Shown here: one piece after another, positions 1 to 35,292 of the stretch | Position numbering within the stretch: position 1 is the stretch's first letter | Layout: each line of letters opens with the position of its first letter | NCBI RefSeq assembly: GCF_001194135.2 | Contig: NC_068988.1 | Span: forward strand, 42,654,451-42,718,450 | From: Octopus bimaculoides | Lineage: Eukaryota | Direction of reading: 5' to 3' | Length of the DNA stretch: 64,000 nucleotides | Made by a program: the position numbers and the translations under genes | The notes under the pieces: generated by a model | Told to the model about the DNA's origin: nothing | Seen by the model: only the letters and a program-made list of their open reading frames with translations | Databases searched by the model: none

Positions 1-354
1 ATCGAATACCACGATGTGAGTGAAAGCTGCTCTCACTGTATTGTCCGGTGTCTGGTAATCTCTTCGATACCGACATCAAACCAAAAAAAGAATCCTGACC
101 ACAGTGTGGGTAATTATGTCAAATGTCACTGGCAATGTGCATTCAGCTGATTGCAACTGTTAAAGCAAGTCACTGAGCATGCGTACATGTCATACGGGAG
201 AGTTCCAATCAGGGGTGGATAATACCTTATAGGAAAGCCCTATATTGACTACATTTCGTTTCGCTTGAACTTCGTGTGTGTACGTTTTGCTGTTTTCAAT
301 ATTAACAATTCTATGAGTGTACGTGTGTGTGTGTTTCAGTAAACTATAGTAAAT

Positions 355-2251
355 GATATTTTACGCCGTTTTAATGAGCCTACATCTAATGAAATAGCCA
401 TCCTTATGGTAGATGATCTCCTTGAAAATCGTGATATTCTCATTTGTACTCGAGATAACAACCTTAAACGTGTTTCAGAGACTCAGCCCTTTTATGATGC
501 TCCCCAGTGTCCTCTTATTTTGTGGAATGGACAAGATGGATATCATTTCAATATTCCACAGATTGAACCTACAACAGGAGTTCCAATTACAAACAAAAAA
601 GTGTTGTCAAATGACTTCTATTCTTACCAAATGATGTTAAGACCAGAACATTCAAATCAATTACACATGTACCGTGATCTATATATATTCAACAAAACCT
701 AGTTGATATGTATACTAAAGTTGAGAGTCAGCGTCTCCTCTACATTCGTAATAATAAAAAAAGTTAAGGGCTAAAAATTATGTTCATCTCCGAGATACTC
801 TGAGGACAGATGGTGATATTCAAAACATGGGGCAACTTGTAATCCTCTCATTATCATTCACAGGTAGTTCTCCATATATGCTCCAACGAACACAAGCTGC
901 TATGATATATGTTTGGACATATGGAAAACCAGATCTTTTTGTCACTTTCACCTGCAATTCTAAATGGGAGGAAATAAAACCTAGCCTTCTTCCAGTCTTG
1001 CATCTTCTGGTATTGCAGCTACTCTCCTCAATGGGGGAAGTATTGCTCATTTCATGTTCAAGCTCCCTCTAAACCTTGCAATAAAAGAATCTCAAATGTG
1101 CAACATTTCCCAAAACTCTGCAATGGCAACAGTTCTCCAATAAGCTTGCCTCATTGTTTGAGATGAGTGCACTGTCACATCGTGGAGCCTCAGAGGTATT
1201 TGACCTACCCTCCAAGACATAAAAAACAATAGCACGTACATGGAAGGAGTAACAGTCTTCTTGCAGGAGATTTTCTTCAAACGTTGCCAGTTGTTCCCAT
1301 AGGATCAAAAGCTGATGATGTCAATGCATGCTTAAAAAAATCGAACCTTTGGAGACGTGTGAAAAAACTTCATCCCACGAGCAACACGACAGTACTTCTA
1401 CAAGGTGATCATACAAGCTTCTTAAGACTTCAGCTACATGAAAATTCATGCGGTCAAATGATACTTTCTCTTAGGGATCTTATAGATAACGTATTTCCTA
1501 ATTGATCTGTGAATTACATTGATGTAAGCTAGCTACGTGAAAGAGCTATGCTACCTCCAACTATAAAATGGTTGATAAACTTAATCATAAACTTCTTCAA
1601 AAGTTATCAGTACATCAGAAATGACTTTTCGATCAATTGACAACAGTCGATCAAGATCACGTTGAATCTCTGAGCACACTTAAACCCAATGAGATGCTGC
1701 CGCATAACTTGACACTAAAATTGCTTAGGAATCTTGACCCATCTCACCTGTGTAATGGAACTCGCTTAATTGTTACTTCCATGAAGCCCCATGACCTACT
1801 GGCAAAATCATAACAGGTATTCATAAAAGAGAAAATCCCTCTCTTTATTCCAAAAATCTCTCTCATACCTACAGATGTTCCATTTGAATTTAAGACGTTT
1901 CAGTTTCCAGTCAAACTAAGGTTTGGTATTTCAATTAATAAATCTCGGGACCAATGCTTCAAGGCAGTTGAACTTGATCTCTCTACTACATGCTTCTCCT
2001 ACGGCCAACTCTATGCTGCTTTCTCGCGAGTTGGAAGCAGCAACAATATATTCATTTCGACACCAACAAAGATTTACACAATGAATATTGTTTACCCTGA
2101 GGTGCTTCAACATTGACAGATTTTTAGTTCGAAATTCTATTATCATTACAATTTGGATATTTTAAAATGATTATGAGAATATATCTTTATATTTATAATT
2201 TACTAATCTGAATAAGAATAGCAGTAACCCGGGCAACGCCGGGTCATTCAG
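355..2251 (+). mobile_element. Decayed Helitron (Rep + Pif1-like helicase remnants), internally deleted
   Basis: Rep-side peptides RRFNEPTSNEIAILMV and YGKPDLFVTFTCNSKWEEI join directly (~985-1005) to helicase peptides GIAATLLNGG..AHFMFKLPLNL, PVVPIGSKADDVNACLKKSNLW, HLCNGTRL, FQFPVKLRF, GQLYAAFSRV, NIVYPEVL (stop 2114-2116). Many stops and frameshifts. 3' hairpin ACCCGG-GCAACG-CCGGGT at 2227-2244; terminal CTAG lost. Confidence 0.92.
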
Positions 2252-2252
2252 G

Positions 2253-2253
<1 letters not shown>

Positions 2254-2309
<56 letters not shown>

Positions 2310-2335
2310 CATACATAGATACATACACACACTCA
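2254..2335. repeat. Compound (CT)n(AT)n(AC)n microsatellite
   Basis: Directly visible; abuts the Helitron 3' end. Confidence 0.95.
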
Positions 2336-2341
2336 CATAAA

Positions 2342-3004
2342 TGGTAATTTCTGTCTGTTACCATCTTGTGCCTACATCAGTGAACCAATCTGGACGAAAC
2401 TTTGCATACATGTTAAACTAACATCCAGTTGATTTATAGGCTAGTTGGATTTCAAATCTATTTGTAAATCTGTCTATTGATCTAATTTATTTTACTTGGA
2501 TGCATATTCGTTTGTTAAAATAATATAGGGATATCCCTTATTCACCCACTAATCGAATTAATAGTTTGTAATGCCTATTTTTAGCAATAAACTATTACCA
2601 TAACGACGGGTTGGGCATAAAGACGGGAACTGAACAGGAAACGGGATAGGACATAGAACAGTGTATTGGTAAATGGAAACTGAGAATAACCCCCGCTTTC
2701 CCGGTATTACCGGTCAACTCATTTATTTTATTCAGATGTGTATTCGTTTGTTAAAATAATATAGGGACATTCCTTATTCACCCACTAATCCTATTAATAG
2801 TTTGTGATAGACTATTACCATATAGGTTAATAAAATATTAAATGGCTTAATTACACCTAACTGACATAGGATTGGGAATAAGAATGGAAGCGGAACTAAA
2901 ATGGGAAATGAACAGGGAACATGATAGGTCATGAAACAGTGTAATGGGGACGGGAACTGGAAATAACCCCCGCTTTTCCGGATATTACCGGGTAATTCAG
3001 CTAG
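2342..3004 (+). mobile_element. Non-autonomous Helitron-like element with tandemly duplicated 3' region
   Basis: Two ~230-270 nt copies (approx. 2505-2725 and 2740-3004), each ending ATAACCCCCGCTTT..CCGG.TATTACCGG. The second is followed by GTAATTCAG-CTAG-T (CTAG 3001-3004), the canonical hairpin + CTRR terminus. Confidence 0.7.
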
Positions 3005-3035
3005 TATATATATATATATATAACATATATATTTG

Positions 3036-3192
3036 ACTGCGGCCATCCTGGAGTACCGCCTTTAGTCGAACAAATCGATCCATTCAGAAAGTTTTGGTCG
3101 ACCCGAGGTTATAGTAGAAGACACTTGCCAAGGTGTCAGTGGGACTGAACCCGGGACCATGTGGTCGGGAAACAAGCTTCTTACCATACAGA
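3036..3192 (-). mobile_element. tRNA-derived SINE family A, internally deleted copy
   Basis: Reverse complement matches the head and tail of the full copy at 16662-17050. Confidence 0.75.
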
Positions 3193-3680
3193 CACATAAT
3201 TAATGGATCAACAACAGTTAATAAATTAATATTCCTTTANNNNNNNNNNNNNNNNNNNNNNNNNNNNNNNNNNNNNNNNNNNNNNNNNNNNNNNNNNNNN
3301 NNNNNNNNNNNNNNNNNNNNNNNNNNNNNNNNNNNNNNNNNNNNNNNNNNNNNNNNNNNNNNNNNNNNNNNNNNNNNNNNNNNNNNNNNNNNNNNNNNNN
3401 NNNNNNNNNNNNNNNNNNNNNNNNNNNNNNNNNNNNNNNNNNNNNNNNNNNNNNNNNNNNNNNNNNNNNNNNNNNNNNNNNNNNNNNNNNNNNNNNNNNN
3501 NNNNNNNNNNNNNNNNNNNNNNNNNNNNNNNNNNNNNNNNNNNNNNNNNNNNNNNNNNNNNNNNNNNNNNNNNNNNNNNNNNNNNNNNNNNNNNNNNNNN
3601 NNNNNNNNNNNNNNNNNNNNNNNNNNNNNNNNNNNNNNNNNNNNNNNNNNNNNNNNNNNNNNNNNNNNNNNNNNNNNNNN

Positions 3681-3713
<33 letters not shown>

Positions 3714-4129
3714 ATTAGTTTGCATAAATATCTCCATGTACTCCGACTTTAAATGTAATCTTTTAAAAGATTTCGAAGAGCGAAAACTAAACTTAAAGAT
3801 TAAATAGAAATTGGTAATCTAGCTACATAACCCATTATTTTACAGTTGCATTATAAAGTTTTATCTGGAAAACTTGCGACTTGTCACGACCAGCAATTAA
3901 GGCCGATTGTAGAAAGCCTCAATTTAAAAAGGTGTAAGACTAAAAGCTAAATGAAGGACAAAGTATGAAATCTAGTAATCACCTGAATCTCACGTCTACT
4001 ATCTCAATTAACAGGAACCAGAGAGAACAGGTGGTTAAGAAGATAGGAGAGAATATTTTAGGAGACCATCTGTTGAAACGATTAGTCAACAGCATATTAC
4101 AAGGAAACAGTTAATGTTGAAGTAATTCG

Positions 4130-4404
4130 TCAAAAGCGGATGTTGCAGAAAAATCCGGTTACATACGAATGAGACCGAACCGGAAGTGACGATTGAAGCA
4201 ACTTGTGTTGGACAGGCACGGCTCTTATAAAGACCTTTATTTACATGCATGAATCACTTACTCATTCTCTTTTACCGTTTTCGCTTGTTTTTCATCCTAT
4301 GTTGTTTTGTGTGTCACATGCTTGCTTGACATATTCGAGGAATCAGTCAACAGTAACTTCAGACAGCATTTTTACTCAATGGACGAGCCACTGTTTATCT
4401 CCAG
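4130..4404 (+). promoter_or_regulatory. Candidate promoter and non-coding first exon
   Basis: ETS-type CCGGAAGTG at 4180-4188 in a locally CpG-containing unique segment. Donor-like CAG|GTACGG at 4404/4405 followed by a long pyrimidine-rich tract. Link to the downstream ORFs is inference. Confidence 0.45.
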
Positions 4405-4469
4405 GTACGGTTGAATTCACATTTTTCTGTCTAATAAACTCAGACCATATTATTTCTTTCTATATAATT

Positions 4470-4830
4470 CATTAGCATGTCTCTCTCATTCTTTCTGTTT
4501 ACGTTTCACCCGCTCACTCAGTTACAACCGTGACTTCATTCGCTCTTATGTTTTTTTGTTTTGTGTTTATTTATCTATATCTCTCATCTCATCTTTTCCG
4601 CTCTTTCTCATTACATTTTGCTCCTCTCTGTCCCTCGACTTTTCCACTATCATTTTGTCGTTCTATCTCTCATCATTCAACGTCATTCTTTTTTCCTATA
4701 CATCTCTCTCCTTCCTATACATCTCTCTCTATTTTTTCAAAATTTCTCTCCCTGTGATTAACAGTTTTTCATCCCCTTTCTGTCTCTTATCTCTCTCTCA
4801 ATCTCTATTCTTTTTTTCTTCTTGTATCTT
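4470..4830. repeat. Pyrimidine-rich low-complexity tract
   Basis: Degenerate CT/T-rich sequence; source of the spurious F/S/L-rich ORFs. Confidence 0.85.
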
Positions 4831-6035
4831 CTCCACATCTACACTTGAGCTGGTAGAATAACCATGTATGAGTTTCATACATGGTTACTTGACCTGCAAG
4901 AAACAGCCACCTAATCTCCCTCCAGTCACACTATCGTCACTCCAACACACCAAGCAAATAAACTAAGGACACTTTGTATAGTGTTGTGCTTACACGCATT
5001 ATTTGAACAAAAGTCTAGACGATCACAGCTGAAATACCTTTGACCATCGCTCTTCCGTACCAAGGTTGACCACGGACTAAACAGCAACTTCCATCCTGTT
5101 TATACATCTCCGACTCTTAATCTCGTTCATGCATGCACACACTTGTTGCATTCTTGAAAAGGATTGTAGTGTCACAATTTTTACGCTAGAGTTTATCTTT
5201 ATAGTTAGACTTTAGTACTATAGCAAAATATATATTATCATACTACACTGTACTACTACATGATTAGTATTTAAGTTAACAACAGCTTTTCAAACTCTGT
5301 TTTAAAAGTAATAAGGCCAATCTCAAACCTCCAAGCGTTGCATGTTTGTGTTTATGTGGCAGTACCTGAAACATTTATGGACACAGTTTCCTTAAATTGA
5401 ATGATTGTAATTCAGGTACCAACACTTTTGAGAAGAGGGCAGTTAGTCGATTACTGGAACATTATTTTATCGATCCCGGAGGGATGCAAGGCAAAGTTGA
5501 CTTGGTCAGGATTTGAACTCAGAGTATAAAGGTCTGTAATTAAATACTACAAACTAGTTTGCCCATCACTCTAACATTTCACCAAACCATCACTAAATAA
5601 TAACATTTGTGTATGTATGGTTAAACATTTACATGTGTGTTTGTGTGTATGATTTAAGTATATTCAAGTGTCGAGGTGTTGTTGATATATTTAAAGCAGG
5701 GAGTATAAAATACTAGAAATGGTTAAAGATTAATATTATTATTAGCCATAAACTAATTTCAGCAAGCCTGATTAAGACAACTCCAAGCATGTTTTGATCT
5801 TATGAAACCTCCGCAGTGAATCATAGATTTTCTGGTATTTGCTAAAAGCAGTGATGATAGAATCACCATGTACATGTACAATAATTTAAATTTGAAGTTA
5901 TACTTGTCTAACCAGTGACTTGATATGAGACTATGTTAAAATTGAAGCAATTTCATTGGAGAAGTACCATTTTAACAATTTTAAAACATATCAAAATCAC
6001 TTTTCTTGGTATCTTTTATCTTGTTATAGTTATTG

Positions 6036-6385
6036 GACTGTGGCCATGCTGGGGCACTGTCTTGAAGAATTTTTATTGAATTGACTGCAGTATTTATTTT
6101 TCAAAGTTCAGTATTTATGTTATCAGTTTTTTTTGCCAAACTGCTAAGTTACGAGAATGTAACCATACCAACACCAGTTGCCAAGCGGTGGTGGGAGACA
6201 AACACAGATGCAATGACATACACACATGTATAATAGGCTTCTTTCAGTTTCTTTCTACTAAGTCCACTCACAAGGCTTTGGTAAGCCTAAGACTATAGTA
6301 GAAGTCCAAGTCCAAGGTGTCTTGCAGTGGGACTGAATCTGGAACCATGTGGATAGGAAACAAACTTCTTACCACACAGCCATGC
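6036..6385 (-). mobile_element. SINE family A copy
   Basis: Reverse complement follows the family A consensus from head (GGCTGTGTGGTAAG) to tail (CCAGCATGGCCACAGTC). Confidence 0.8.
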
Positions 6386-6939
6386 CCGTCAATATTTTCT
6401 ACACATACCTGCTCAACTTGATGTCTATAAGAAACTGCCATCCTTTTGTTATTGTATTTGTAGTGTATTTCTGTTGAATCACAGGCTTTTGTTTCAATCA
6501 ATTTTGAAAATACTGAAGAATTTTTTAAGATAAAAAAGTCTTGATTGACCATCTGTAACTTTTCTTTTTTTACCTTTTCAAAGCAGTAAAATGTGATTTG
6601 AGGTACATTTAGCTGCTATTTCTAGCAAGTCAAGCAACAGCATAAAAACTCCAGAGTTGGCTTGTAGTAATAAATATTTTGGCCATGATCATCAAGTATA
6701 GTATATCTTAATGATTATATGTAATTATATATATATTAACATTGTTTTAAGGTCTACTTTTCCATGCTTGCATGATCAGATGGAATTCAATGAGGCAAAT
6801 TTTCTACAGTTGGATGTTCTTCCTGTTTGTGAGCAAGCTAATATTTCCCTATAGCTAAACATATCTTTAACAGAAGATAAATGACTCTTGTTTACAACCA
6901 TCATGTGATATCAAGACAAAGACATCCACCCACTTGGGT

Positions 6940-7547
6940 GTCACTCTGAGGACATGTACTAAGAGTGATAAAAATCACATTCACTCAACATCATTATGTT
7001 TGGAGTGATCACTCATGATGGCAATATTATGCCTCCATTCATCTTCTCATATGGCTTTAAACTCAACACAGAGGCCTACATCAAATGCCTGGAGGTGGTA
7101 GTACTGCCCTGGGTCAAGAATGTGGCTGCTGGGACTCTGCACCATGCCACACAAGCAGGAGGACCCAGTCATGGCTGTCAGACAATTTCTGCGACCACAT
7201 CACCTCTAACATCTGGTCACCTAACTCCTCAGACTGCAACTCCCTTAATTATTATGTGTGGGGCGCAGTTGAGCAAGAGACCAACAAAACTCATCGTTGA
7301 ACTGAAGGCAAGGATTATGGCAGCATTCACCAACTTAAACAAGGAGACTATTGAGAAGAGTTGCAGGAGATTCCGAAGTCATCTGGAGGCCGTGGTCGAA
7401 GCCAATGGCAATTTTATTGAATAAATTTACTCTTTAGTATTTCAAGATATTTTTATGTAATTTGGGTAAATATTTCTGCTAAAATGAGGTCTCAGTGTTA
7501 TTTTCATTGTTGTGTAATTTAGATGACAGTTTATACACCGCACCTTG
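6940..7547 (+). mobile_element. Tc1/mariner superfamily, maT-like (DD37D) transposase 3' fragment
   Basis: MFGVITHDGNIMPPFIF...AYIKCLE, frameshift, DSAPCHT...WSPNSSDCNSLNYYVWG (37 residues between the second and third catalytic positions; third D mutated to N), ...CRRFRSHLEAVVEANGNFIE*. Ends in TIR-like CGCACCTTG at 7539-7547. Confidence 0.85.
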
Positions 7548-7742
7548 CATATGGTGTGGCTGTGTGGTAAGTTTGTTCTCCAACCATATAGCTCTGAGTT
7601 CAGTCCCACTGTGTGGTACCTTTCACAAGTGTCTTCTACTATAGCCTTGGGCTGACCAAAGCTTTGTGTGTGGATTTGGTAGATGGAAACTGAAAGGAGC
7701 CTGTTGTGTGTGCATACATACATATATACATTTAAAAATTGT

Positions 7743-8146
7743 TGCTTCAAATCGGAGAATAAATGTCATTATGATATATATTATATGCAATTATTATACT
7801 ATGAGCCTTCCATAGTAGCTTTCTCTCTGTAACTCGCAAAGTCTTTCGGGTTTGTTTATAAAAATATTATTTATGTAGTATCAAGACAGTTTATATATAT
7901 ATTAACTAAATTTGACTGAAATTGATGGGTAAGCGTTTGGCCAATCAGATATACAAGGAGCCATGAAAGCATTGATCTGTGAGTTCGATTTAGCCTGATG
8001 TTAGCTCATCATTTTTCAGTCATTTGTTTATATTTAAAAATTCTCGCTTCAAATCAGAGAATAACTATCACTATGATATACAGTTATTATACTATGAGCC
8101 TTCCATAGTAGCTTTCTCTCTGTAACTTGCAAAGCCTTTCAGGTTT

Positions 8147-8150
<4 letters not shown>
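7743..8150 (+). repeat. Direct repeat, ~110-nt blocks about 305 nt apart
   Basis: GCTTCAAATC(G/A)GAGAATAA...TATACTATGAGCCTTCCATAGTAGCTTTCTCTCTGTAACT(C/T)GCAAAG..TTTC.GGTTTGTTTATA occurs at ~7744 and ~8047. Confidence 0.85.
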
Positions 8151-8196
<46 letters not shown>

Positions 8197-8854
8197 GTGT
8201 GTGTGTGTCTGTGTTTGTACCCCCACTGCTTGACAACCAGTGTTGATGTGTTTCTGTCTCTGTAACTTAGCAGTTCAGCAAAATAGCTTGATAGAATAAG
8301 TACCAGACTTTTAAAGAAAACAAAAAACATAAGGACTGGAGTTGATTAATTTGATTAAAATTCTTCAAGGTGGTGCCCCAGCATGGCTGCTGACTCACAG
8401 CTGAAACAAAGAAAAGATAAAAGATAGACATAATATATCCAGGCTTTGATGAAACTTGTTCCGGCTATGACCATCCTGTACTGTTTTCAGACATCCTGTA
8501 TCGAGGACTAGAGATTTTACTAGTATTGCTAGTGGCTCAAATGACCACTTTAGAAACACTTTGTTGATGTCTACTTCCAATATCAATTAATATAATAAGC
8601 AGTGTCTGTATCAGCCTGCTCTAGTACTTTCACTGTCTGAATTTCAAGAATAAAACTAGCATGACATTTACATAGCTGAGCTATAATACTTCCACTCTGT
8701 CTGCATATCTGTGGAAACACTAACAAGTTGCTTAGTTCACTGAATACAGAGTAGGAATCTACATAGTTTAAATATCCATTTATAAATTGTATATTTTATT
8801 TATTTATTTATTTGTGTGTATATTTTATTTATTAAATGTTAAAGAGGAACAGGT

Positions 8855-9229
8855 GGAGGTGCAATGGCCCAGTGGTTAGGGCAGCAGAATCGCAGTCATA
8901 AGATCACGGTTTCAATTCCCAGACTGGGCATTGTGAGTGTTTATTGAGCGAAAACACCTAAAGCTCCACGAGGCTCCGGCAGCAGATGGTAGCGAACCCT
9001 GCTGTACTCTTCTACCACGACTTTCTCTCACTTTTACTTCCTGTTTCTGTTGTGCCTGTAATTCAAAGGGTCAGCCTTGTCATACTGAATATCCCTGAGA
9101 ACTACATTAAGGGTACACGTGTCTGTGGAATGCTCAGCCACTTGTACGTTAATTTCACGAGCAGGCTGTTCCGTTGATCGGATCAACTAGAACCCTCGAT
9201 GTTGTAAGCGACGGAGTGCCAACAACACA
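8855..9229 (+). mobile_element. tRNA-derived SINE family C, full length with TSD
   Basis: A-box TGGCCCAGTGG and B-box-like GGTTTCAATTCC. 14-bp TSD AAAGAGGAACAGGT at 8841-8854 and 9230-9243. Near-identical copies at 33843 and 35480. Confidence 0.9.
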
Positions 9230-9671
9230 AAAGAGGAACAGGTATTTTATTGAATTAATCCCTTTCAGTAGCTTGCCACAAGTAATGAAGTATAAAACTG
9301 AACATCACCCATGAGTTTTCTAGTTTCTGTTTATATCTTTAAGACCATCCTCCTTCTCTTTCAACTGGGGTGGTCATGTATCTTCTCAGAGCAAGATACT
9401 TATTCTTGTCCCTGCTATCATTCTTAACCTCTTCCCACCTGGCATAAAACCACCTCCTTCAATACTACTCGTCGACCTTGGTTGAGTGATCTTGTCTTGC
9501 AAATTACTTGGTAACTGTGCTAGTGCTGGTATCACGTATAAAACACTCAATACTCTGTAAAGTGGTTAGCGTTAGGAAAGGCACTCAGCCATAGAAACCA
9601 TGCAAAAGCTGACATTAGACCTTGGTGTAGTTTTCTGATTTGTTAGCTCCTGTGAAACCATCCAACGCACA

Positions 9672-10015
9672 CTAGGTATTGTTTTCAGTTGTGTTTGTTT
9701 GTCTATGGACAAGATATCACAAAAACCTCTGGATTGATTCGGATGAAACTTTCAGGGATGTTTGGCCTCATGACTGGCAGGAACTGATTAGATTTTAGGA
9801 TCAATCCAGTACCGGAAAAGGATTCTGGATTATTTTTCCTGTTTTTTTTTTACTTAATTTTTGAGAGTGGTTGGGTTCATTTTTAGTATCCTTGTTTGTG
9901 AGAGTAATCGAGTTTATTTTAGATATTCTCATTTTAAAAAATCATTTCCGGCTAATTGTTGAGAGGACATTGGTGTTGCCTTGGCTGTGGTCTGTGCTCT
10001 CTGAGTGCTCTTGTT
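9672..10015 (+). mobile_element. Non-autonomous Helitron-like repeat
   Basis: Starts GTGTTTGTTTGTCT...GGATGAAACTTTCAGGG and ends GGTCTGTGCTCTCTGAGTGCTCTTGTT, an architecture I associate with non-autonomous Helitron-like elements (recall only). Confidence 0.45.
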
Positions 10016-11369
10016 ATTATTATTATCATTATTATTGAGTGAGAGAACAGTGCATGCTATCAAAATGACACTGGAGTACAGATATACAAAGCCCAATATA
10101 CCCATCATGACAGCCTGTGTGATAAGGGTGCATCACAACTATATGTGCATGATATGGTGATGTCATATCAAGATAAACAGCGCATGACCTTGCAGGTGGG
10201 GCCCAGTTAGAATCTTCTTCCAGTCAAGTAGCCCATCCCAATATTATTATTTTAATATTATTACCACTTTCATGAAGTTAATTAAATGCTTTCAATTATT
10301 CTAGTCATATAGTGAGGTAAATTTTGCTTTACACTTCATCACTATTCATAAAGGTAATAGCAGTTCACTTGTATAACATTTACTTATATAATTAATTCAC
10401 TTGGCTTCCATAATGCATCATTACCAGGTTACCTTGTAGTATATTTTTTTCCTTTAAGTAATATAGTTTGTGCTATCTGCTGAACTATATGCATGTCTGT
10501 AATAAATGTGACGTAACATACTGAGGAAATTATATGAAACACTCTTATTAACTGTAACACTTGAGTTATGAGAGCACCAAGTCTAAATTTGGAATGGTTA
10601 TTATTCTCATTATGTTCGTCATTTGCCTGTTCTCTTGTTTCATCTTAGCATATCCTGTTTTTCTGTTTTAGTTCCTGCTTATGACAATAACACAGGCATA
10701 ATAAAGATTTGGTTACTATTTTCAGCCAGTTGTATAAACATGTATAGACTCTCTTGTTCATTTCTTGATATATAGATGCTGTCAATACTTTCTTTTGCAT
10801 TGTCCCACTCGGTGCCAATGGGTACAAGTAGAAAACATTTCTTGAGGTCTGTCATCAGATAGGAGAGAGGCCCTAATCATGTAGGTAATGGTTTGGGAGG
10901 ATGTTTTATCTTAGATGTACAATAACATATCTTATCCATCTCTGGCTTGATACTTGTGCTTAAGGAGTCCAGAATTTTGTGAGATGTGGCTGCTTGGTAA
11001 GAAGTTTGCTTCCTAACTACATAATTTTGGCTTCAGTCCCACTCCTTGGCATTAGGGAAAGTGTCTTCTATTATAGCCCCAGGCCAACCAAAGCCTTGTG
11101 GTTTTTATTTTGTTGATGGAATCTGAAAGAAACCTGTCATATATATATGTGTGTGTGTGTCTTTGTGTTACTGTTTCCTTGCCTTGACGTCACTGTCATG
11201 TAAAGTGTCTTTTGTTGTCAATCCTCTGTGAAAACATTTCTGCTCTTGAGGAAATATTACATTACTTGGAAACTTGAAAGTGTAGCTGACAAGAAAGGCA
11301 TCCAATTGTAGAAAATTTGCCTCAACAAATTCTGTCTGAGCCATGTGAGCATTGAAAAAGTCATCATTA

Positions 11370-11790
11370 TTATCATCATCATCATCGTTTAGCGTCTGCT
11401 TTCCATGCTGGCATGGGTTAGACAGTTTGACTGGAACTGGTAAGCCAGAAAACTGCACCAAGTTCCAGTCTGATTTGGCCTGCTTTCTACAGCTGGATGC
11501 CCTTTCTAACCCTAACCACTCCAAGAGTGTAATGGATGCTTTTTACGTACTACTGGCACAGGTGCTTTTATGTGTCATTGGCATGGATGCTGGTTACATG
11601 ATACCAGCATTGGCCACGACTATGATTTCATTTTGCTTGATGAACCTTCTCAAGCACGGCATATCGCCAAAGGTCTCAGTTGCTTGTCATTGCCTCTGTG
11701 CGGCCCAACTTTTGAAGATCATGCTTCACCATGTTGTCCCATGTCTTCCTGGGTCTACCTCTTCCACGATGATGATGATGCCTTTGACTA
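11370..11790 (-). mobile_element. RTE LINE 3' end fragments (ORF2 C-terminus + 3' UTR + (GAT)n tail)
   Basis: Homologous to 26600-27255 and 31222-31500. (CAT)n on + is the (GAT)n tail. Confidence 0.8.
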
Positions 11791-12451
11791 CTGACTTCCA
11801 GCTGAGCTTCTTACAAGAGTCAAAATGATTGTTACTGGCAACTGATCTGTTCCAGTCTCTTCTTTCCCTCCCCACACCAACACTAACTCACTTTAACCCC
11901 TGTAGTCATAGATAAAAAAGTAAAACTATTTTTTAATTTTTATTTTTTATTTATACCAAAATACAAGTAAATAACACACATTGAGTAAATTTTTCAAGAA
12001 TTCAATATTCAATATGCTTAATTTTTGGCATGGATAATTAAAAATTTGCTAACACTAGATAAAAAAATATCAATTTACTTAGCTCTGTGAAATTTACAAG
12101 AAGCCGCAGCCATTCTGTATGACTTGTGAGCAAACACTGAGTCAGAATCATGTGGTCTCCGTTATTTATGTGTTTTAGAGGTGTCCAATGAATTGGTAAC
12201 TGTGATTCAAATTAATTACAATTTATATTTGTTTTGTAATTTATGCTGAAAATTGTCCAATACATTGAACAAAGTAAAGAACAAGAAAAGGAAGGATTCT
12301 ATAAAAAAAATAAAAGATAATGAGAGCCAAATTGATTTATCTTTGTGGACTTTAGTCTAAATTTGATACTACCCTCTACTTTTAAATCAAAAACACACAT
12401 CTTGTTCCTTCATTGTGATACTGGTATACTTGATATACATACATATATATA

Positions 12452-12487
<36 letters not shown>

Positions 12488-12719
12488 TGTATGTATGTAT
12501 GTATGTATGTATATATAAATATANNNNNNNNNNNNNNNNNNNNNNNNNNNNNNNNNNNNNNNNNNNNNNNNNNNNNNNNNNTATATATACACTCAAATGG
12601 TGCTATTTACGGGCCACTAGCAGGAAGCCAGACAGCTGCTTTGGCAATGAACATGCTCGGACAGTGCTGCTAGTGCTCCACTGGTGCAGGTGCCAGTCAT
12701 CGAGTATGGTTCAATTACG

Positions 12720-12900
12720 ATTTCGATTTCACTTGCCCCAACAGGTCTTCGCAAGTAGAGTTTAGTGTCCAATGAAGGAGAGGTTGGCATGGGTGCCAGT
12801 CGTTGGATTCGGTTCGATTTCAGATTCCAGATTTCAAATTGCAAATTCACTTACCTCAACAGGTCTTCACAAGCAGAGTTTTTAGTGTCCAATGAAGTAA
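12720..12900 (+). repeat. Local direct duplication (~55 nt, ~125 nt period)
   Basis: TTCACTT(G/A)CC(C/T)CAACAGGTCTTC(G/A)CAAG(T/C)AGAGTTT..AGTGTCCAATGAAG occurs twice. Confidence 0.8.
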
Positions 12901-13455
12901 AGATACGAATAAGTGAGCTGGCTACACTTCTGGCAGAGCTCACAGATTATGCTCTCACTTGCCTTACCAGGTCTTCTCACGTACTGCATATTTCCAAAGG
13001 TCCCGGTCACTGGTCANNNNNNNNNNNNNNNNNNNNNNNNNNNNNNNNNNNNNNNNNNNNNNNNNNNNNNNNNNNNNNNNNNNNNNNNNNNNNNNNNNNN
13101 NNNNNNNNNNNNNNNNATGGAAAGCGGATGTTAAACGATGATGATGATGATGATGTGTGTGTGTGTATGTATATATGTGATGGGGCAGTCTATATAGATG
13201 TAATCCCCGTAATTTGAAACCAGTTGCTAAGTGCCAATGCATGAAACTGAGCCCTTCAGTCACTCTGTCACTTGTGCTGATTATATAATATGTATTTATG
13301 TATTATACATATTAAATTTCTCATAAATCTCTTTTCTTTCTTCCAGTTCTATCACGTGATGTTATGAAAGACTTGTGACGGAGAATCTTGAAATTGTTGA
13401 AAAGTCTGGAGACGTTGAATATATTTTGTCAACCCCCTGTCAGGAGCAGGTTCCA

Positions 13456-13722
13456 ATGAAGGTTGACTGGATTACAGAGGTTGTCAGTCGTGACAAAGTC
13501 ATCATCTTGCTTGTTAATTATGCCTTCTTGCTTGTAGTAGTTGCCAGTTTCATGATTTTTCTCCTCTACCTAACGCAAGACCTCTCCCCAAATATCAACT
13601 GGTCGGCATCACTGATGCTCTTAGCTGCAGCTTTTGTTATAGCTAATATGTTTCTGGCCAGCTACATTGTCCAAGTGCTACATGTACGTAATGAACTGCC
13701 CATGATATACTTTCAGTCTTGA
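13456..13722 (+). CDS. Uncharacterised 88-aa protein with two predicted transmembrane helices
   Basis: MKVDWITEVVSRDKVIILLVNYAFLLVVVASFMIFLLYLTQDLSPNINWSASLMLLAAAFVIANMFLASYIVQVLHVRNELPMIYFQS*. Unique, non-repetitive, GC-richer than its flanks, with two hydrophobic ~20-aa runs. Strong acceptor CTTTTCTTTCTTCCAG ends at 13346. The open frame extends upstream to a TGA at 13357-13359. Confidence 0.6.
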   Translation: MKVDWITEVVSRDKVIILLVNYAFLLVVVASFMIFLLYLTQDLSPNINWSASLMLLAAAFVIANMFLASYIVQVLHVRNELPMIYFQS

Positions 13723-14086
13723 AAGTTTGTCATCTGTTCTGTCAACCTAATCCTCTTCCATCCATATCATTTTATTTTTGTCTTCACAAGTGAGAAATTA
13801 CAATCAAGTTAATTGGACCAGTTTGTTTTAGTATTTACTAACGCATACATATTGATGCTTGGTACACTCATACATTTGTTCTTTCTCTCGCTTTAGATAC
13901 TAATATATATATGTTTTTGTATGTGAATATTAATCTTATTCTATCTGGATTACACTTATATTTATGTGTATATATGTGAATATATAATGGAAGATAATTC
14001 CAAATTAATTCAAATAAAGATAAAATTAGGTGATACATTATAAACGTTTTAATAAGAAAGTTAAAATTTTAGCTTCATCCATTACC

Positions 14087-14662
14087 ATGGAGACACAAGC
14101 TAACAAAAATGACACTTACATTTCAAGTTTGAAAATCAAACCTGACTATTCACATTCTTCTCACTTATCCCCACCACAAAATCTTCTTTACCCCACGGAC
14201 CAAAGCAAACAACTGGACCCAACTGCTTCCTCATTACTGAGTCCTTGTTCAAAATATACAGTGTCACAGCTTGTGGACAGCGCACAGATCCTTGTCTCAA
14301 CATTTGTGTTCAGTCACTGGGACAACATCCTTGGACCTCGAGTTGAGCAAGTGTGGTTCAATGGTGAGGCTCTTCTGCTCGATCAAAGCACCCTTCTGCA
14401 GATCTGTAAGCAAGGTTTAGCTGGAGAACTATGTCGGGACTTAAGCAGCAGTATTACTGATTGGCGCATCCATACCATTCCGGACAAAAATGTTGCTGCG
14501 GTTGTATTTGTGTTCAGTGCTAATGGAACCAATGGCCTTTCTTTACATAGCTTCACTTTGATTATACAGTTGGACCAACTTGAATATTTTCTCCACCTCT
14601 CCGATCTTATCTACAGCTGGATTAGCCGGATGGTTGGTAAACTACGTGTACTTCTTGAGAAG
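14087..14662 (+). CDS. C9orf72: C9orf72 coding exon 1 (longin/uDENN region)
   Basis: ACCATGG start at 14087, acceptor-like TTTTAG at 14067-14072 just upstream. Encodes ...STFVFSHWDNILGPRVEQVW...VLLEK. Donor AAG|GTAAGC at 14662/14663, phase 0. Confidence 0.93.
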
Positions 14663-15117
14663 GTAAGCAATCTATATCATTTCTTTTCTCTTTCTATTTA
14701 TCTATATTGCTGGTGACCTAATAAACAATGCAAGTGAGTGTCAGGAAAGCAAAGTAGTCAGTTTAAAAGGTTCAGGGATCTCTTAACTCTATTGGCATTG
14801 AAAAGTTTCTTTCTTTGAGTGTAAGGCAGATATAGGTTGGTTGGTCAGCCTGAGACTAGAGAAGAAGGTACTTACCCAGGGTGCCATGTAGTAGGACTGA
14901 ACCCAAAACCATGTGCTGGGAAGTGAACTTCTTTAACCACAAGCCATGCCTGTAGCTCAGTTATTTAATAATAAAGATTTTTTTTTATATGGGCACAAAT
15001 TCAGAAATTCTGTGGCGTGAGAACAATCAATTATATTGATTCCAGTACTTCACTGTTACTTGTTTTATCAACAAATGAGATCAGCATTGGTGAGATTTGA
15101 ATTCAGAACTTATAAAA

Positions 15118-17050: not shown

Positions 17051-19442
17051 AATGAATTAAAATATATTGTTTGCATGAAAAAAGTAATTGAAATTTTCTT
17101 CTCCTACATACATAAATGGTACAAAGGAAAGATAATTATTCACTAACAAAAGCCACCCAATAGATGAAAAGAGTTCATTCAAGCTGATAGATGTCTGATT
17201 CTAAATTCTATAGAATGATAGAATAATTGTAAGGTAATTCTTTTCACTCTGTAATCCTTATATTTACACGTAAAAACAAATGAAACAATAGACCATGTTC
17301 ATTATTAAATTAAATTCATTTCAATATTTAGGTATTTAATGAGTGTTAGCATGGCAATGTGACTAACAAATTCACTTTGCAACAGTGGGCCTCTTAAGTT
17401 CAATCCCATAGCACAGCACCTTGGACAAGTGTCTTCCATCAAAGCTTTTGGGTTGGCTAATGCCTTGTGACAGTATCAGTTAAGTACTGGGGTCAATATA
17501 ATTGACTGGTCTCTCTCTACAAAATTCCTGACTTTGTGCCTATTTAAGAAAACCTTTATCAATAAATGATAGCAGTGCAGGCATGGTTGTATGGATTATG
17601 AAGTTCACTTTCCAACCGCATGGTTTTGGTTTCAGTTCCCATTGCATAACACCTTGGGCAAGCAAATGTCTTCAACTGTGTGTGTCCTGACAATAACTGT
17701 AAATGAGTGGAAGATGATAAAAGGTGTGGATGTCCCTCCCCACTCTCTGTATGTATGTATGTATGTGTGTGTGTATGTATGCATATATATATATATGGGA
17801 GAATATACAAATAATAACAACAGACGAGGACAGGTGGTGTAAATAACAAAAGTATATATTAGTAAAGGAATTTATATGTAATGACCATTATTTTTAACTT
17901 GTCTCTTATATATCATTCTGTAAAAAACAGTTTATCTGAAGCCCATCCATGGATTTACAATATAGAATTGTGATGAACCATAACTTGGGACCCTACCAAA
18001 AGATTACTGGGAGTTTTTTTGTTATCTTGGTCTGCCTACAGAGAGCTCATGAAGTATTTTGCTTGGATTGATAATTCTTCACTATTTGTTCTGTGTGTGT
18101 GTGTGTGTGTATCTGTATATGGCTATATGGTTAAGGCAAGTGTCTTCTGCTGCAACCTTAGGCTGTCCAAAGCATCCAGCCATAAAAAAGAAATCTGTCA
18201 CACAAAAAGTACTAAACACACACACACACACACACACACATCTACACAACTATGTGTAGGTAGTGTTGTTAATAAGTTTGCTTCTCAACCATGTGGTTTC
18301 AGGTTCAATTCCACTGCATGATACTCTGGGCAAGTGTCTCGTGTCTTCACCTGTGATATTGTGAGTGAACAAACAAAAGGAAGTTGAGAGAAATTTGGCA
18401 GAAGTTAACCAATAATATCAACAACAGCAACAACTTATTGATGTTATTGATTAACCTCAATAAGTGATTGGACATACTCAATGGTGCATAATGGCACAAG
18501 AGTGTCTGATTGAAGAGTATTTGATCATTTCTACCAGTCTCCATCTACCGTCACATTTCCAATGTGGAGCATGTTAACCTTAGATGTCACACTTAAGACC
18601 TGTTTATGATTCCTCTACCTCAGCTTATAAAGAGAGATCTTACATCTATATTGATTAGGTGTAGACGCTACATGTAAGTTCTCAAGCTGATTTTATATCT
18701 GATACTTCGTCAATAAACAAACCCATCTGCTGTTTGGGAGTGACCCACAAATTTTGTACATGTAATTTTAGTTAAATTTCAGTGTATAATTAAACATTGA
18801 CAGGCATACTATTGTAAGTGTTAAGACTATACAAACTTGGACACTATTTTAAAGAGAGTAAGGAAATTGTTCAAAAAAGATTTGTCTTGAAGAGGACTAT
18901 GGGACTTGTTCTGTGCAGTTCCTATTTCATATAAATGAAGTGTTTGTTGTTGGATATTTGGCTGCTGTGTTGAACAAGTTGAACCTTTATTATTCAGATT
19001 ACTCTTTCAAATGTAATACTTATTTATATTGTTTTGAGTTGATCATACATTATCTCATAACTTTGACATTTTATACGATTATTTATTTTGAGAATGATAT
19101 AGGGTAGGTGTGTGAGGCCAGATCTGGCAGATTTGTGCATAAACCAAGTAGAATATTTGGGTTGGATACAGCCAGTTTAAATGCTAAAGGGTTAAGGAAC
19201 TACGTAGATGCTCTGTTGATGATTCATAGTGTCCGTATTATGAAGATAATGTGGATCTTGTGAAAAAATTTAGCTATTATGTGGGATAGGTTGAGGAACT
19301 ACATGTAAGATGTTTTGGTGGTTTGTGTGCCCCCTCCCTGCCATAAACATTTGAGGATTTAGCTGCTGCTTTGAGCAGGTTCATTGACCATGTAGAAGCT
19401 TTCTGACTGCAATTTTTTTCTACATTCTTCTGTCTGTTACAG

Positions 19443-19544
19443 GATTCTAGAAATGAAGCTCTGTCTGTATTTACATCTTACCTGTGTAATTTTACAGAGA
19501 TGCTGCTATCTTTGAGTGAAGCTAAGCTACCAACTGAAGTTGAA
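19443..19544 (+). CDS. C9orf72: C9orf72 coding exon 2
   Basis: Pyrimidine tract and TTACAG acceptor. Encodes DSRNEALSVFTSYLCNFTEMLLSLSEAKLPTEVE (cf. human MELLSSMKSHSVPEEID). GTAAGT donor; 102 nt. Not shown in the ORF track. Confidence 0.85.
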
Positions 19545-19729
19545 GTAAGTAAAACAAAGTTTTATGTTTCTAGTCTGTGTGTGCATGCAAGATATGTGTT
19601 TATCTCCACATAGGTACAGGTGTGGCTCTGTGGTTGAGAGGTCTGTTTCCCAACCATATGGTTTTTGTTTCAGTCCCATTGCTTGGCACATTAGTGTCTT
19701 CTGTTATGGCCCTCTGAATGGATTTAGTG

Positions 19730-27255: not shown

Positions 27256-27791
27256 TGAAGTTTCTACCAACACCTTTTCTACAGATCAAACAGGGCCACC
27301 TACCTGAAGGGGTTTGTGATTTGTCAGCCTTCCTACTTACTAAGACTTTGGTTTTTGCTGGGTTAACTGCAAGGCACTTTATCTCATTTAATATACACAT
27401 GCACCCATGCTGGTACCACATAAAAAACGTTCAGTACATTCTGTAGAGTGGTTGGCATTAGAAAGAATATCCAGCTGTAGAAACCATGCCCGAGCAGATA
27501 ATGGAGCCTTTTGCAGCCCCAGGCCTTACCAGCTGAGGTCAAACTGTCTAACCCATGCCAGCATGTAAAACAGACGTTAATCGATGATGATGATTTAAAT
27601 GTGCACTGCTATTAGTTTCATGTCTCTGCAAATAGAATGATCAGACAAGCCTGTAGAGCATTCCTTGTATTTTCAGACAATCATTCAGATTCCATCGGGA
27701 TGGTGGTAATGATCTGAGTAAGGAATTGGTAAATTTGGTGGTGGTTATTGTGATCATGATTTATTGTGTTCATTCTGTCCTCTTCCACCAG

Positions 27792-27920
27792 GTTGATGAC
27801 AGTATCCTCTGCCCATCTCACAGCATCGAAGAGGACTTCCTCCGGACAATGATATCATCGCACCTCATGACCTTCGGCCGCAGCGTCGTCATTGGTAAAC
27901 ATATCAAGCAAGTTAATCTC
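27792..27920 (+). CDS. C9orf72: C9orf72 coding exon 3
   Basis: CCACCAG acceptor. Encodes VDDSILCPSHSIEEDFLRTMISSHLMTFGRSVVIGKHIKQVNL (cf. AISSHLQTCGCSVVVG). GTAAGT donor; 129 nt. Confidence 0.92.
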
Positions 27921-29654
27921 GTAAGTAATTAGCACTAATTGTTTTAATGTCTTTATTTGGTATTTAACACAAGTTATTTTATTTGTTGTTGTTGTTTTTC
28001 GGGGCTAGAGTAGGGGGTGAAAGGATAACTCCCCCCCCCCCTTACAATTTGTAGTTTCTTATTTTGACATCACCGCGTCATCTCAGTCTCTTCTTTATGG
28101 TTGCCATAATTACAACTGGTTATTCTTAGTGTAATACAGAAGGTGTGTTGCCATGGTGAAGTTATTGCTATGGTAACTTTGTCTTTTTTAGATTATTATA
28201 ACTTAGTGTGGGGTTGGTGGGTAGTGTCTATGATCTTTGTAAGCCCTCTGAGATTGCTATGTGGTTGCTACAACAGCCTTGTCTCTCTGGCAACATTGTT
28301 GCTACAACAGTGCTGTCCATCTAGTAATGTGTTTTTTGCTACAAATGCTCTCTAGTAATGTGTTTTGCTATGGCAGCTCTGTATATTTCACCAAAATACT
28401 AGGGTTAATTTCAACAATTATACCACTGATTGCCACATTCTTAGACAAGTTAATAAGGTCCCTTGTTAACTTGTGTGAAAGTTTCTGTTTTCTCCAGTTG
28501 TTCGAATTAACAACCAAATTTCCCTCAAGTCACATTCTGTCATCTTAGAAAATGACATGTTGGATATTTTATCCCAGGGTTCCTGCTCATAGGAAAAAAC
28601 CTAGAATGGTTATGGCTGGAACGCCTTTGGTCACAGGTCTGTCCAATCAAGGTCTCTTCTATCTATTTTTCAAAAAGATCATGAATGCAATAATTAATAT
28701 AATAATCCTTCCTTACTATATGCACAAAGTCTGAAATATTGGGAGAGAGGGCTACTCAATTATGTTGCCCCCTCCCCAGTACTTCACTGGTACTTAATTT
28801 ATTGACCCCGAAAGGATGGAAAGCAAAGTCAATCTAATAATAAAATAAAATTGTTTCTAATTTAGACACAAGGCCAGCTAGCTTGAAGGGAGCAGGTAGT
28901 TGATATTAACTTCAGTACTTGGCTGGTGCTTTATTTTATTGATCCCCCACAAAGATGAAAGACAAAGTTGAACTCAGAATGTAAATAGCCAAAGCAAATA
29001 TAACAAGTCATTTTGTCTGATGCTCTAGTGATTCTGGCAATTCACTGCTCCCATGTTAATTGCCTTGGAAGCTGTTATTATTATCTTTGTTGTTATTATT
29101 ATTATAGCAGTGAGCTTAATTTGTAGTTATTATTAAGGCATGCTGGGCAAAATGCTTAGTGGCATTTCGTCTATCTCTATGATCTGAGTTCAAATTCTGC
29201 GGAGGTTGACTTTCCCTTTCATCCTTTCGGGGTCGATGAAATAAGTACCAGTTAAACACTGGGTCTCTGTAATTGACTAACACCCCCTCCTCCCAAATTT
29301 TAGGTCTTGTGCCTCTAGTAGAAAGGTTTATTATTATTTTTGTTGTTGTTGTTACAAGAGTACTTAAGTTCTTAGTAATGAAAAAGTTACCTATTGAAAG
29401 TTGATAGAGGATGAAGTAAATAAAAATGCCAAAATAACAAGAAAATGAGAAAGTTATATTCACCACTCCCAAAATACTATACAGGTATGATGCACTGCAG
29501 AAGTTCATGACGAACAGCATTTCTTGTGGAGACATAATGAGGCACAAATACATCTTGGCCTTCTGAATTGTCAATCTGTGTAATTTCAAAGTGTTTGTAA
29601 CCCTAACCTTAATCCTGACCCAAGAGTACAACAGGGGTACCCCACCCCCGCCCC

Positions 29655-30466: not shown

Positions 30467-30589
30467 GTTATTAACACACTGGCGTTATTTAACACACCAG
30501 AAGAGAGATTATGTTCACGACGTGTCTTGGACCAGACAGGCAAGATGTGGCCATATCATCATGATCTTTACCTTCAAGGTATTGTTGCT
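30467..30589 (+). CDS. C9orf72: C9orf72 coding exon 4
   Basis: GAAAG acceptor after pyrimidine tract. Encodes VINTLALFNTPEERLCSRRVLDQTGKMWPYHHDLYLQGIVA (cf. IVRTLCLFLTPAERKCSR...GLFVQGLLK). GTAAGT donor; 123 nt. Confidence 0.92.
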
Positions 30590-31221: not shown

Positions 31222-32732
31222 CATTGGCATAGGCCACGGGTTATGGTCTCACTTGGCTTGCCGGGTCTTCTCAAGCACAACATATCTCCAAAGGTCTCGG
31301 TCACTTGTCGTTGCCTCTGTGAGGCCCAATGCTGGAAGGTTATGCTTCACCACCTCATCCCATGCCTTCCTGAGTCTACCTCTTCCACAGGTTCCCTCCA
31401 CTGTTAGGGTGTGACACTTTTCCACACAGCTGTCCTCATCCATTTGCAACCCATGACCATACCAGCTCAGTCGTCTCTCTTGCACACCACATCTGATGCT
31501 TCTTAAATCCAACTTTTCTCTCAGGGTGCTTACACTCTGTCATGTATGCACACTGACATTACACATCCAGCGGGACATACTAGCTTCATTCCTTGCAAGC
31601 TTACGCATGTCCTCAGTAGTCACAGTCCATGTTTCACAGCCATGTAGCATGGTTGTTTGCACACATGCGTCATACAGTCTACCTTTTACTCTGAGCAAGA
31701 GGCCTTTGTCACCAGCAGAGGTAGGAGCTCTCTGAATTTTGCCCAGGCTATTCTTATTCTAGCAGCTACACTTTCAGAGCATCCACCCTCGCTACTAACT
31801 TGGTCACCTAGGTAACAGAAGCTATCAACTACTTGTAGTTTTTCCCCCTTGAATGTGATGGAAGCAGTTTTCTGCACATTTCCAGTGTTTATTGCACCTG
31901 AGCATTTGCTACACACAAAAGCTATCTTCCCAGTTAGCCTTCCTGTGATATTGCTGCACCTCTTATATGTCCATAGCTTACACTGGGTACATCTTATGGA
32001 GTTTCTACCTACACCTTTTCTATAGATCGAGCAGGGCCATCTACCTGAATGTATTAAGATTTTGGTTTTTGCTAGGTTGACTCTTTGATTCTAGACCTTG
32101 CTTCCACACCTGAAACTTCTTCTCTAGTTCTGATAGTGTCTCAGCTATTAGAGCAAGGTCATCAGCATAGAGAAGCTCCCAGGGGCATCCTGTCTTGAAT
32201 TCCTCTGTTATTGCCTGGAGGAATATGATGAATAAGAGGGGGCTGAGGACTGATCCTTGGTGGACCCCTACTCCTACCCAGAATTCATCACTGTACTTGT
32301 TGACAACCCTCACCTTACTGACAGCATCCCTGTACATGGCCTGTACAGCTCTCACTAACCATTCATCTATCCCTAGTTTCCTCATTGACCACCAGATAAG
32401 GGATTGGGGGACCCTGTCAAAGGCTTTCTCCATGTCAACGAAAGCTAGGTACAGAGGTTTATCTTTGGCTAGGGATTACTCCTGCAACTGTCTTACCAGA
32501 AATATAGCATCAGTGGTGATTTTTCCCTGGCACAAACCCAAACTGCATCTCGTCTAGACTGACTCTCTCCCTAATTAGTTGGGCTATGACTCTCTCCGTG
32601 ACTTTCATTACCTGATCCAACAACTCAATACCTCTGTAATTATTTGTATCTAATGCATCACCTTTACCATTGTAGCAGTTGACTATGGTGCTGCTACACC
32701 AGTCATTGGGTATGACTCCTTCATGTATTTAT
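31222..32732 (-). mobile_element. 5'-truncated RTE-clade LINE (RT domain, PHD-like finger, C-terminus), pseudogenised
   Basis: Peptides NYRGIELLDQVMK, QFGFVPG, LAFVDMEKAFDRV, GVHQGSVLSPLLF, LLYADDL, then a Cys/His cluster, VDSFCYLG, RIRIAWAKF and RRLSWYGH. In-frame stop and frameshifts. Antisense in C9orf72 coding intron 4. Confidence 0.93.
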
Positions 32733-33552
32733 AATAATCGTAGCAGCTAGAAGGACAGACATACTGCAGCAAAGTTTGTACCTAAATAGGTCAGTTCCTG
32801 TCCATTTGAACTTCACCTGACATAGCTGAGGTCGTAGGTCAAAGGAGATGATCAATCACCTTTTGACAGGACAAAGAAAACTTTTTTCATGCCTGTTGAT
32901 CATGGTGGTTTGGACGACCAAGAATTCTTACATTCGGTTTCGAATCTAGGCTTGGAGAAGGAAATGTTAATTTTTACACTTGTAACCTTAGATATCCATA
33001 TGATTTCAATAAGCCCTCAAATTGCTCTGAACCTTTCTGTTAATCTTTCCTGTTCCTAAGAGCCTCAACAGGACATTCTGTTTCAATCTCCTTTATCCAT
33101 TTGTCTACTTCATCACTCACAATTCCTAATGCACCATTTGTCACAGGTACGACCATTACAATTTCAAATCCTCATAGTCTCAAATTTGGAAGGATTGTAG
33201 TTTTTCAACTTTTCATTTGTTTTCTTCACAATTTTTATATGAAATGGACATGGTAGATCAATCATTGTGCAAATCTGATTTTATTTGTTTATTACTGTAA
33301 TTACTCTCCTCCTCCTCCTACTGCCACCACGACCACCACCACCACCACCACCACCAATCGACTAGTAATCGACTAGTCCCCTCCCCCCAAAATTTTAGGC
33401 CTTGTGCCTTTAATAGAAAGGATTATTATTATTATTATTATTATTATTAAAGTCAAGTTTGACCTATAAAACACTAAAAGGAAGTCACCATGTTTAAAAG
33501 ATGAAGAATTTGAATGTCACTCATCTTATTTGTTGATATTTTTTTATTTCAG

Positions 33553-33749
33553 GAACCAGGTAGCAAGATCTCTCACCTGATGAAAGATATGTTGACCAGT
33601 AAATACCCAAGTTCTGTCATAGACCTGAATCTACAGAGAGTCTTGCAGACCCCTGATCATTCCAGTCACGAGACCTATCGGCAAGAGATGCTGAAGAACG
33701 AACTTATTTGTCTGCATTATGATGATAACTATGAATCCTACATGAAACG
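33553..33749 (+). CDS. C9orf72: C9orf72 coding exon 5
   Basis: TTTCAG acceptor. Encodes EPGSKISHLMKDMLTSKYPSSVIDLNLQRVLQTPDH...YMK (cf. YPTTHIDVDVNTVKQMP). GTGAGT donor, phase 2; 197 nt. Confidence 0.9.
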
Positions 33750-34900: not shown

Positions 34901-35231
34901 ATCTTTATAACCAACTTGTTTCTTAGCTACTAATTATTGTATCAAGTCGATTACCCCCCAATAGGACAGTTCCCCCGATGACAACCCCCTAGGAAATTAT
35001 CCCCCTTGGTTAATTACCCCGTCTCCAATGTATTAAGTTTTAAATCATCTGTTGTCCTCAGGGGTAATTGTCTTCGGGAGATTATTGTACATGAGGGGTA
35101 AATTTCATAGACTCACTAATTATACCACTGGTTAAGCTTCCACCACTATCATTTCCCAGTCCAGTCCACATCATCATCATCATCATCACCACCACTGCCA
35201 TTATAACATTGATAATTGTTTTGTGTTGCAG

Positions 35232-35292
35232 TAAAAATTTTGTTAATGTCACAGACTGTGTCGAATCATTTGTGAAAACGCTCCGGAAAGAG
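35232..35292 (+). CDS. C9orf72: C9orf72 coding exon 6
   Basis: TTGCAG acceptor. 61 nt restores phase 0: (R)KNFVNVTDCVESFVKTLRKE (cf. DTLVKAFLDQ). GTGAGT donor. Confidence 0.85.

Follow-up and report, generated by a model that had tools for sequence, protein, structure and literature searches.

A bicistronic animal mRNA whose upstream ORF encodes a conserved membrane microprotein has been described for STREMI and SLC35A4, where an upstream ORF of about 100 codons encodes a hairpin protein with two transmembrane (TM) segments, lies on the same mature mRNA as a larger conserved protein, and both ORFs are under purifying selection (PMC13303939). Other animal loci carry two conserved ORFs on one capped mRNA, including PYURF/PIGY (one product of which is a roughly 70-aa two-TM membrane protein), the MIEF1 microprotein, MOCS2A/B and Drosophila stoned A/B; in several of these the two products act in one pathway. 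In nematode-type operons same-strand genes separated by a short spacer are transcribed together, but the pre-mRNA is resolved by SL trans-splicing into monocistronic mRNAs. C9orf72 acts in a soluble complex with SMCR8 and WDR41, which in vertebrates needs a membrane protein, PQLC2/SLC66A1, to dock at lysosomes.

The locus studied here lies in a 64,000-nucleotide stretch of Octopus bimaculoides DNA (the window; contig NC_068988.1, positions 42,654,451 to 42,718,450), in which an 88-codon ORF sits directly upstream of C9orf72 on the forward strand. As in STREMI/SLC35A4, the upstream ORF encodes a conserved two-TM protein, predicted to be a hairpin, but there is no sequence similarity to STREMI. 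STREMI has conserved GxxxG motifs and sits in the mitochondrial inner membrane, whereas the present family has an invariant N-Y-x-F in TM1 and no GxxxG; the downstream gene is C9orf72 rather than a nucleotide-sugar transporter, and the taxa are lophotrochozoan rather than vertebrate. No homology was found to the PYURF/PIGY, MIEF1, MOCS2 or stoned products; at the octopus locus the small TM protein is the upstream cistron and the spacer is long, AT-rich and not AUG-free. In contrast to resolved nematode operons, the spliced, mature-looking contigs of relatives described below still carry both ORFs, although monocistronic, SL-capped forms cannot be excluded. PQLC2 is a seven-TM transporter encoded elsewhere and is unrelated in sequence; a membrane protein co-encoded with C9orf72 is a natural candidate for a comparable docking role, but by analogy only. 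What is new is the protein family and its disease-relevant downstream partner; full-text literature searches found no prior description, which is absence of evidence in the literature searched and not proof of novelty.

The sequence-only reading had described an 88-aa ORF with two hydrophobic helices, a strong acceptor before it, an AATAAA and an acceptor-like AG before C9orf72, and its observation is confirmed in full. The ORF runs from ATG (13456–13458) to TGA (13720–13722). The acceptor-like site upstream consists of a polypyrimidine tract plus CAG (ctcttttctttcttccag|ttc, AG at 13345–13346) and is conserved in the closest relative, although a second acceptor-like site near 13444 is not excluded. 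The 5′ leader (13347–13455) contains an in-frame TGA at 13357–13359 which closes the frame upstream, so the ORF is complete within one exon. The intercistronic spacer (13723–14086) measures 364 nt (about 365 had been stated), has a GC content of 0.26, and contains the AATAAA (14013–14018) and the AG at 14071–14072. The C9orf72 ATG at 14087 lies in a strong context (attaccATGG). A donor-like ccag|gtacgg is present at 4404/4405, at the end of a putative non-coding first exon (4140–4404) proposed in the same reading; this exon has no comparative or RNA support, since alignment of the mRNA leaders of two spliced contigs (L015 and L016, see below) to window positions 1–13460 gave only noise, the leaders of relatives being too diverged to align.

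Hydropathy analysis of the 88-aa peptide shows two peaks centred near residues 25 and 62, separated by an 11-residue polar loop that lacks K and R. AlphaFold2, run with a 16-sequence alignment, predicts a helical hairpin (H12–43 and H49–86), with only moderate confidence (mean pLDDT 70.8). Predicted TM helix 1 (residues 15–39, 13498–13572) holds L18, N21, Y22 and F24, which are invariant in the family alignment, and predicted TM helix 2 (residues 51–75, 13606–13680) holds the invariant F60 and A68 and the nearly invariant S52, A57 and V72.

The downstream ORF is C9orf72. Its first coding exon (14087–14662, donor GT at 14663–14664) alone matches Pfam PF15019 with an E-value of 1.5e-4 (21.9 bits), below the 27-bit cut-off, but products of the relatives carry PF15019 and the 494-aa C9orf72 protein of contig L015 maps colinearly by tblastn onto eight window exons, covering 14087–14704 in the first. 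The remaining coding exons, given as approximate tblastn/blastn footprints, are 19440–19547, 27789–27929, 30467–30586, 33535–33723, 35230–35295, 38159–38272 and 39351–39566, with the stop at about 39564–39566.

The small ORF is a real coding sequence. The only near-identical protein among 5.8 billion clusters (P0001, 99% identity) lies on a 1.8-kb genomic contig of a close relative (L001) that is colinear with window 13186–14707; a look-up of the exact window peptide in an assembly index found nothing on record. Between the window and L001 identity is 97.4% in the small ORF and 94.8% in C9orf72 exon 1, both without indels, but 87% with 53 gap columns in the spacer and 78–79% with many indels in the leader and upstream sequence. 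The 7 substitutions in the 267 nt of the ORF comprise 6 synonymous and 1 non-synonymous changes (dN/dS about 0.045), compared with a dN/dS of 0.05 for C9orf72 exon 1. Against the more distant L015 synonymous sites are saturated, and pN is 0.16, against 0.15 for the conserved core of C9orf72 exon 1. A chance ORF is rejected on the selection, homology and synteny evidence.

The sequence-only reading could assign the peptide to no family, which is correct for curated families, but homologues do exist. Pfam searches with the peptide and 16 family members gave only sub-threshold hits (best E 0.0036, far below cut-offs) to unrelated TM families (DUF2162, holin, DUF3180), which we read as compositional. 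A profile search of PDB sequences (E 2.2) and a Foldseek search of the AlphaFold2 model against the PDB (best E 3.5) returned nothing significant, a helical hairpin being too simple a fold to be informative. An exhaustive phmmer search of 1.84 billion representatives identified five real relatives, counting P0001; the other four (P0005, P0006, P0007 and P0009) have E-values from 7.9e-10 to 2.4e-4, and a sixth hit, P0008, a 540-aa tandem-repeat protein, was rejected as spurious. A profile search found 18 proteins of 80–101 aa, once predicted N-terminal read-ins are trimmed. Only two of the 18 carry any name, in both cases ‘hypothetical protein’: LSAT2_000519 of Lamellibrachia satsuma (Annelida) and PoB_002104700 of Plakobranchus ocellatus (Gastropoda). 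The others come from contigs, some of them cephalopod-like, a term that for L015 rests only on its similarity to the window. Current annotations thus miss or orphan this gene. A scan of JGI metagenome contigs with the family profile gave no confirmed relative.

At all ten distinct loci recovered (eight lineages) the small ORF lies directly upstream of a C9orf72-like first coding exon on the same strand, with spacers of 62–560 nt. The spacer is 364 nt in the window, 401 nt in L001, 348 nt in contig L005, 376 nt in genomic contig L014 (ENA), 83 nt in genomic contig L024, 62 nt in the Plakobranchus genome (L013) and 430 nt in the Lamellibrachia genome (L012), or 322 nt if an in-frame upstream ATG is the true start. 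In the spliced contigs it is 560 nt (L015–L020), 408 nt (L021) and 220 nt (L022/L023). In L024 an acceptor (ttttttctttttatag|) about 88 nt upstream of the small-ORF ATG and a donor after C9orf72 exon 1 bracket both ORFs in a single exon-like unit, the same layout as in the window.

Intron-free contigs from three other lineages carry the small ORF, the spacer and a complete C9orf72 ORF. L015–L020 come from six separate sequencing runs and are 99.8–99.96% identical over their full length; each carries an 88-aa ORF (73% identical to that of the window), the 560-nt spacer and an uninterrupted C9orf72 ORF, which is 494 aa where complete and is cut by the contig end in three. L015 aligns in order by blastn to window 13453–13722, 14234–14643, 19454–19526, 27802–27908, 30512–30586, 33578–33722, 38145–38271 and 39465–39523, spread over 26 kb, so the introns have been removed while the spacer is retained. 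These are short-read assemblies, none of them from the window's own species, and such assemblies can merge overlapping or read-through transcripts of neighbouring same-strand genes, so the contigs do not prove that single molecules carry both ORFs. L021 (93 aa + 538 aa) maps in the same way onto the separated exons of the Plakobranchus genome, and L022 (85 aa + 459 aa) adds a third lineage. A genomic contig of an L015-like species shares a 28-nt spacer block and the ATG-proximal sequence colinearly with the L015 mRNA, consistent with no intron in the spacer.

We therefore favour, with a probability of about 0.8, the reading that 13456–13722 encodes a genuine, conserved 88-aa protein, predicted to form a hairpin of two TM helices, and is the upstream cistron of a bicistronic C9orf72 mRNA. 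In this view one exon, starting at or near 13347, carries a short leader, the small ORF, the spacer and the first 192 codons of C9orf72, and is then spliced at 14662 to the remaining C9orf72 exons; this layout recurs in the gastropod and annelid genomes and in the other contigs. The analysis itself establishes that the ORF is under purifying selection, has orthologues and lies immediately upstream of C9orf72 at every locus recovered, and that assembled, spliced contigs of three other lineages contain both complete ORFs; that the octopus makes the same bicistronic mRNA, that either ORF is translated and by what route, and the topology, localization and function of the peptide are inferences. 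The interpretation offered by the sequence-only reading, that one upstream first exon may feed both ORFs either as one bicistronic mRNA or as mutually exclusive products, is partly supported: comparative evidence supports the bicistronic alternative, whereas the alternative-last-exon option is not supported.

The conserved two-TM architecture, the polar N-Y pair near the start of TM1 and the acidic loop, together with neutral or positive termini, point to a peptide that functions through helix–helix contacts in a membrane, presumably with both termini in the cytosol and the loop in the lumen. Its fixed position on the C9orf72 message suggests a role in the same endolysosomal pathway, for example as a membrane partner of the C9orf72–SMCR8 complex, but this is the weakest step of the inference and a direct functional partnership is considered unlikely on present evidence. 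Co-encoded proteins need not work together, as STREMI and SLC35A4 are described as originally independent genes joined by retroposition (PMC13303939). A more speculative and equally doubtful possibility is that the peptide is an ancient, previously unseen membrane subunit or receptor of the C9orf72–SMCR8 complex, kept on the same mRNA so that the two are made together, and later lost, moved or diverged beyond recognition in vertebrates, nematodes and other lineages. If so, it would reveal an ancestral way of attaching the complex to endolysosomal membranes and give a new search image for a vertebrate counterpart. A conserved membrane microprotein sharing an mRNA with C9orf72, in both molluscs and an annelid, is a concrete and testable candidate partner, and would add a deeply conserved invertebrate example to the short list of animal bicistronic mRNAs that encode two functional proteins.

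Of the alternatives, the one that survives best, although unlikely, is the alternative last exon, in which transcripts from one promoter either splice to 13347 and end at a poly(A) site in the spacer (near 14030 in the sequence-only reading), or skip to the AG at 14071–14072 and continue at 14073 as a monocistronic C9orf72 mRNA, the bicistronic form being a minor by-product. Both signals exist, the AG is conserved in L001, and the AT-rich spacers of L015, L021 and L022 also contain PAS-like hexamers. However, the AATAAA reads AATAGA in L001, the closest relative; no PAS-like hexamer occurs in the spacer at four of the other nine loci scanned (L001, L005, L012 and L013; a tenth locus was read by eye); the spacers of 62 and 83 nt cannot hold both signals; and the tract before the AG is A-rich (gttaaaattttag), a poor acceptor. 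All 8 contigs carrying protein P0012 fall in the 2–5 kb class, and the six shown carry both ORFs; no short monocistronic contig was recorded, although minor monocistronic isoforms cannot be excluded.

Slightly less likely are two independent, tightly linked genes, with a C9orf72 promoter in or near the spacer and the joined contigs arising from read-through transcription or from assembly merging of overlapping UTRs. Gene predictors called two separate genes in Lamellibrachia and Plakobranchus, de novo short-read assembly can fuse neighbouring same-strand transcripts, and the spacers of the window, L001 and L015 (364–560 nt) are long enough for a compact promoter. Against this, adjacency, order and strand are the same in every mollusc-type and annelid locus recovered, which is unusual for unrelated neighbours; the 62- and 83-nt spacers leave little room for a poly(A) site plus an independent promoter; identical joined contigs with spliced C9orf72 were assembled independently in six samples; and both ORFs lie in one exon-like unit in L024. 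A purely regulatory upstream ORF is very unlikely because, although the position in the 5′ leader of C9orf72 mRNA resembles that of classical regulatory uORFs and a regulatory effect on the downstream cistron is almost unavoidable, it is the amino-acid sequence that is conserved (dN/dS 0.045, six columns invariant between molluscs and an annelid, two-TM architecture and loop character retained) and 80–101 codons is much longer than typical regulatory uORFs.

As to how the second cistron would be read, we favour leaky scanning past the small-ORF AUG plus reinitiation after the tiny spacer mini-ORFs, but this is inferred, and an IRES-like route or minor monocistronic isoforms remain possible. 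An Rfam search of 13200–14200 gave one chance-level hit (E 0.69) and folding of the spacer is not unusual (z −0.86), so there is no evidence for a structured IRES. Spacer AUGs are not depleted (6 against 5.7 expected in the window, 12 against 7.7 in L021), which is not what a spacer shaped for efficient scanning would show and would be harmless if C9orf72 were mostly translated from a transcript lacking the spacer. The start contexts and the spacer mini-ORFs are compatible with scanning and reinitiation: the small-ORF AUG has C at −3 and A at +4, a weak context, in the window, L001, L015 and L022, whereas the C9orf72 AUG has a purine at −3 (A in the window) and G at +4, a strong context, in the window, L001 and L015. 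All but one of the spacer AUGs tallied open mini-ORFs of 1–37 codons that end before the C9orf72 AUG; the six in the window open mini-ORFs of 1–22 codons, and five of these six AUGs are in the weakest context.

In the lineage represented by contig L005, a polypyrimidine tract plus CAG sits directly before the codons for VVNRE (L005 219-247; family members P0007 and P0014), and P0007 has no ATG there. The N-terminus of the small ORF is therefore probably located on an upstream exon, meaning that an intron lies inside the small ORF in this lineage. P0014 (150 aa) differs at the other end of the protein, where it reads through the usual stop codon for about 57 further residues; this could be a real variant or an assembly or sequencing error. 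In the Lamellibrachia satsuma locus (L012 10629-10737), the annotated C9orf72-like start at 10737 has an in-frame upstream ATG at 10629, which is in a better context and is not separated from the annotated start by a stop codon. The annotated N-terminus is probably 36 residues too short.

In the window, a second acceptor-like site (ccccctgtcag/gagcag/, 13434-13450) lies just before the small-ORF ATG and its motif is duplicated in the leader of contig L001, the close relative, which leaves the true 5′ boundary of the exon provisional. An assembly gap (run of N, about 13017-13116) is located only about 230 nt upstream of the acceptor-like site that precedes the small-ORF leader, and many more N runs, flanked by TA/CA microsatellites, occur across the window; the assembly is a draft and intron sequence is missing. 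The spliced contigs L015 and L016 both begin (positions 1-24) with a sequencing-adapter remnant (…GTGCTCTTCCGATCT), their first real bases are therefore fragment ends and the 5′ ends of these contigs should not be read as transcription starts. The spacer between the two ORFs is otherwise fast-evolving, but a 28-nt block of it (L002 186-213 and L015 652-679) is 89% identical between two related species that are more distant from the window. No counterpart was noticed when the window's spacer was inspected by eye only, and the block may be a regulatory element.

One remnant and one probable remnant of mobile elements were also found in the window. A reverse-transcriptase fragment (Pfam RVT_1, E 1.8e-13) lies on the opposite strand inside a C9orf72 intron [32041-32433 (-)] and is a retroelement relic. 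A weak DDE_3 transposase-like match [56059-56283 (+), E 0.0025, below cut-off] lies next to an N gap and is probably a decayed DNA transposon.
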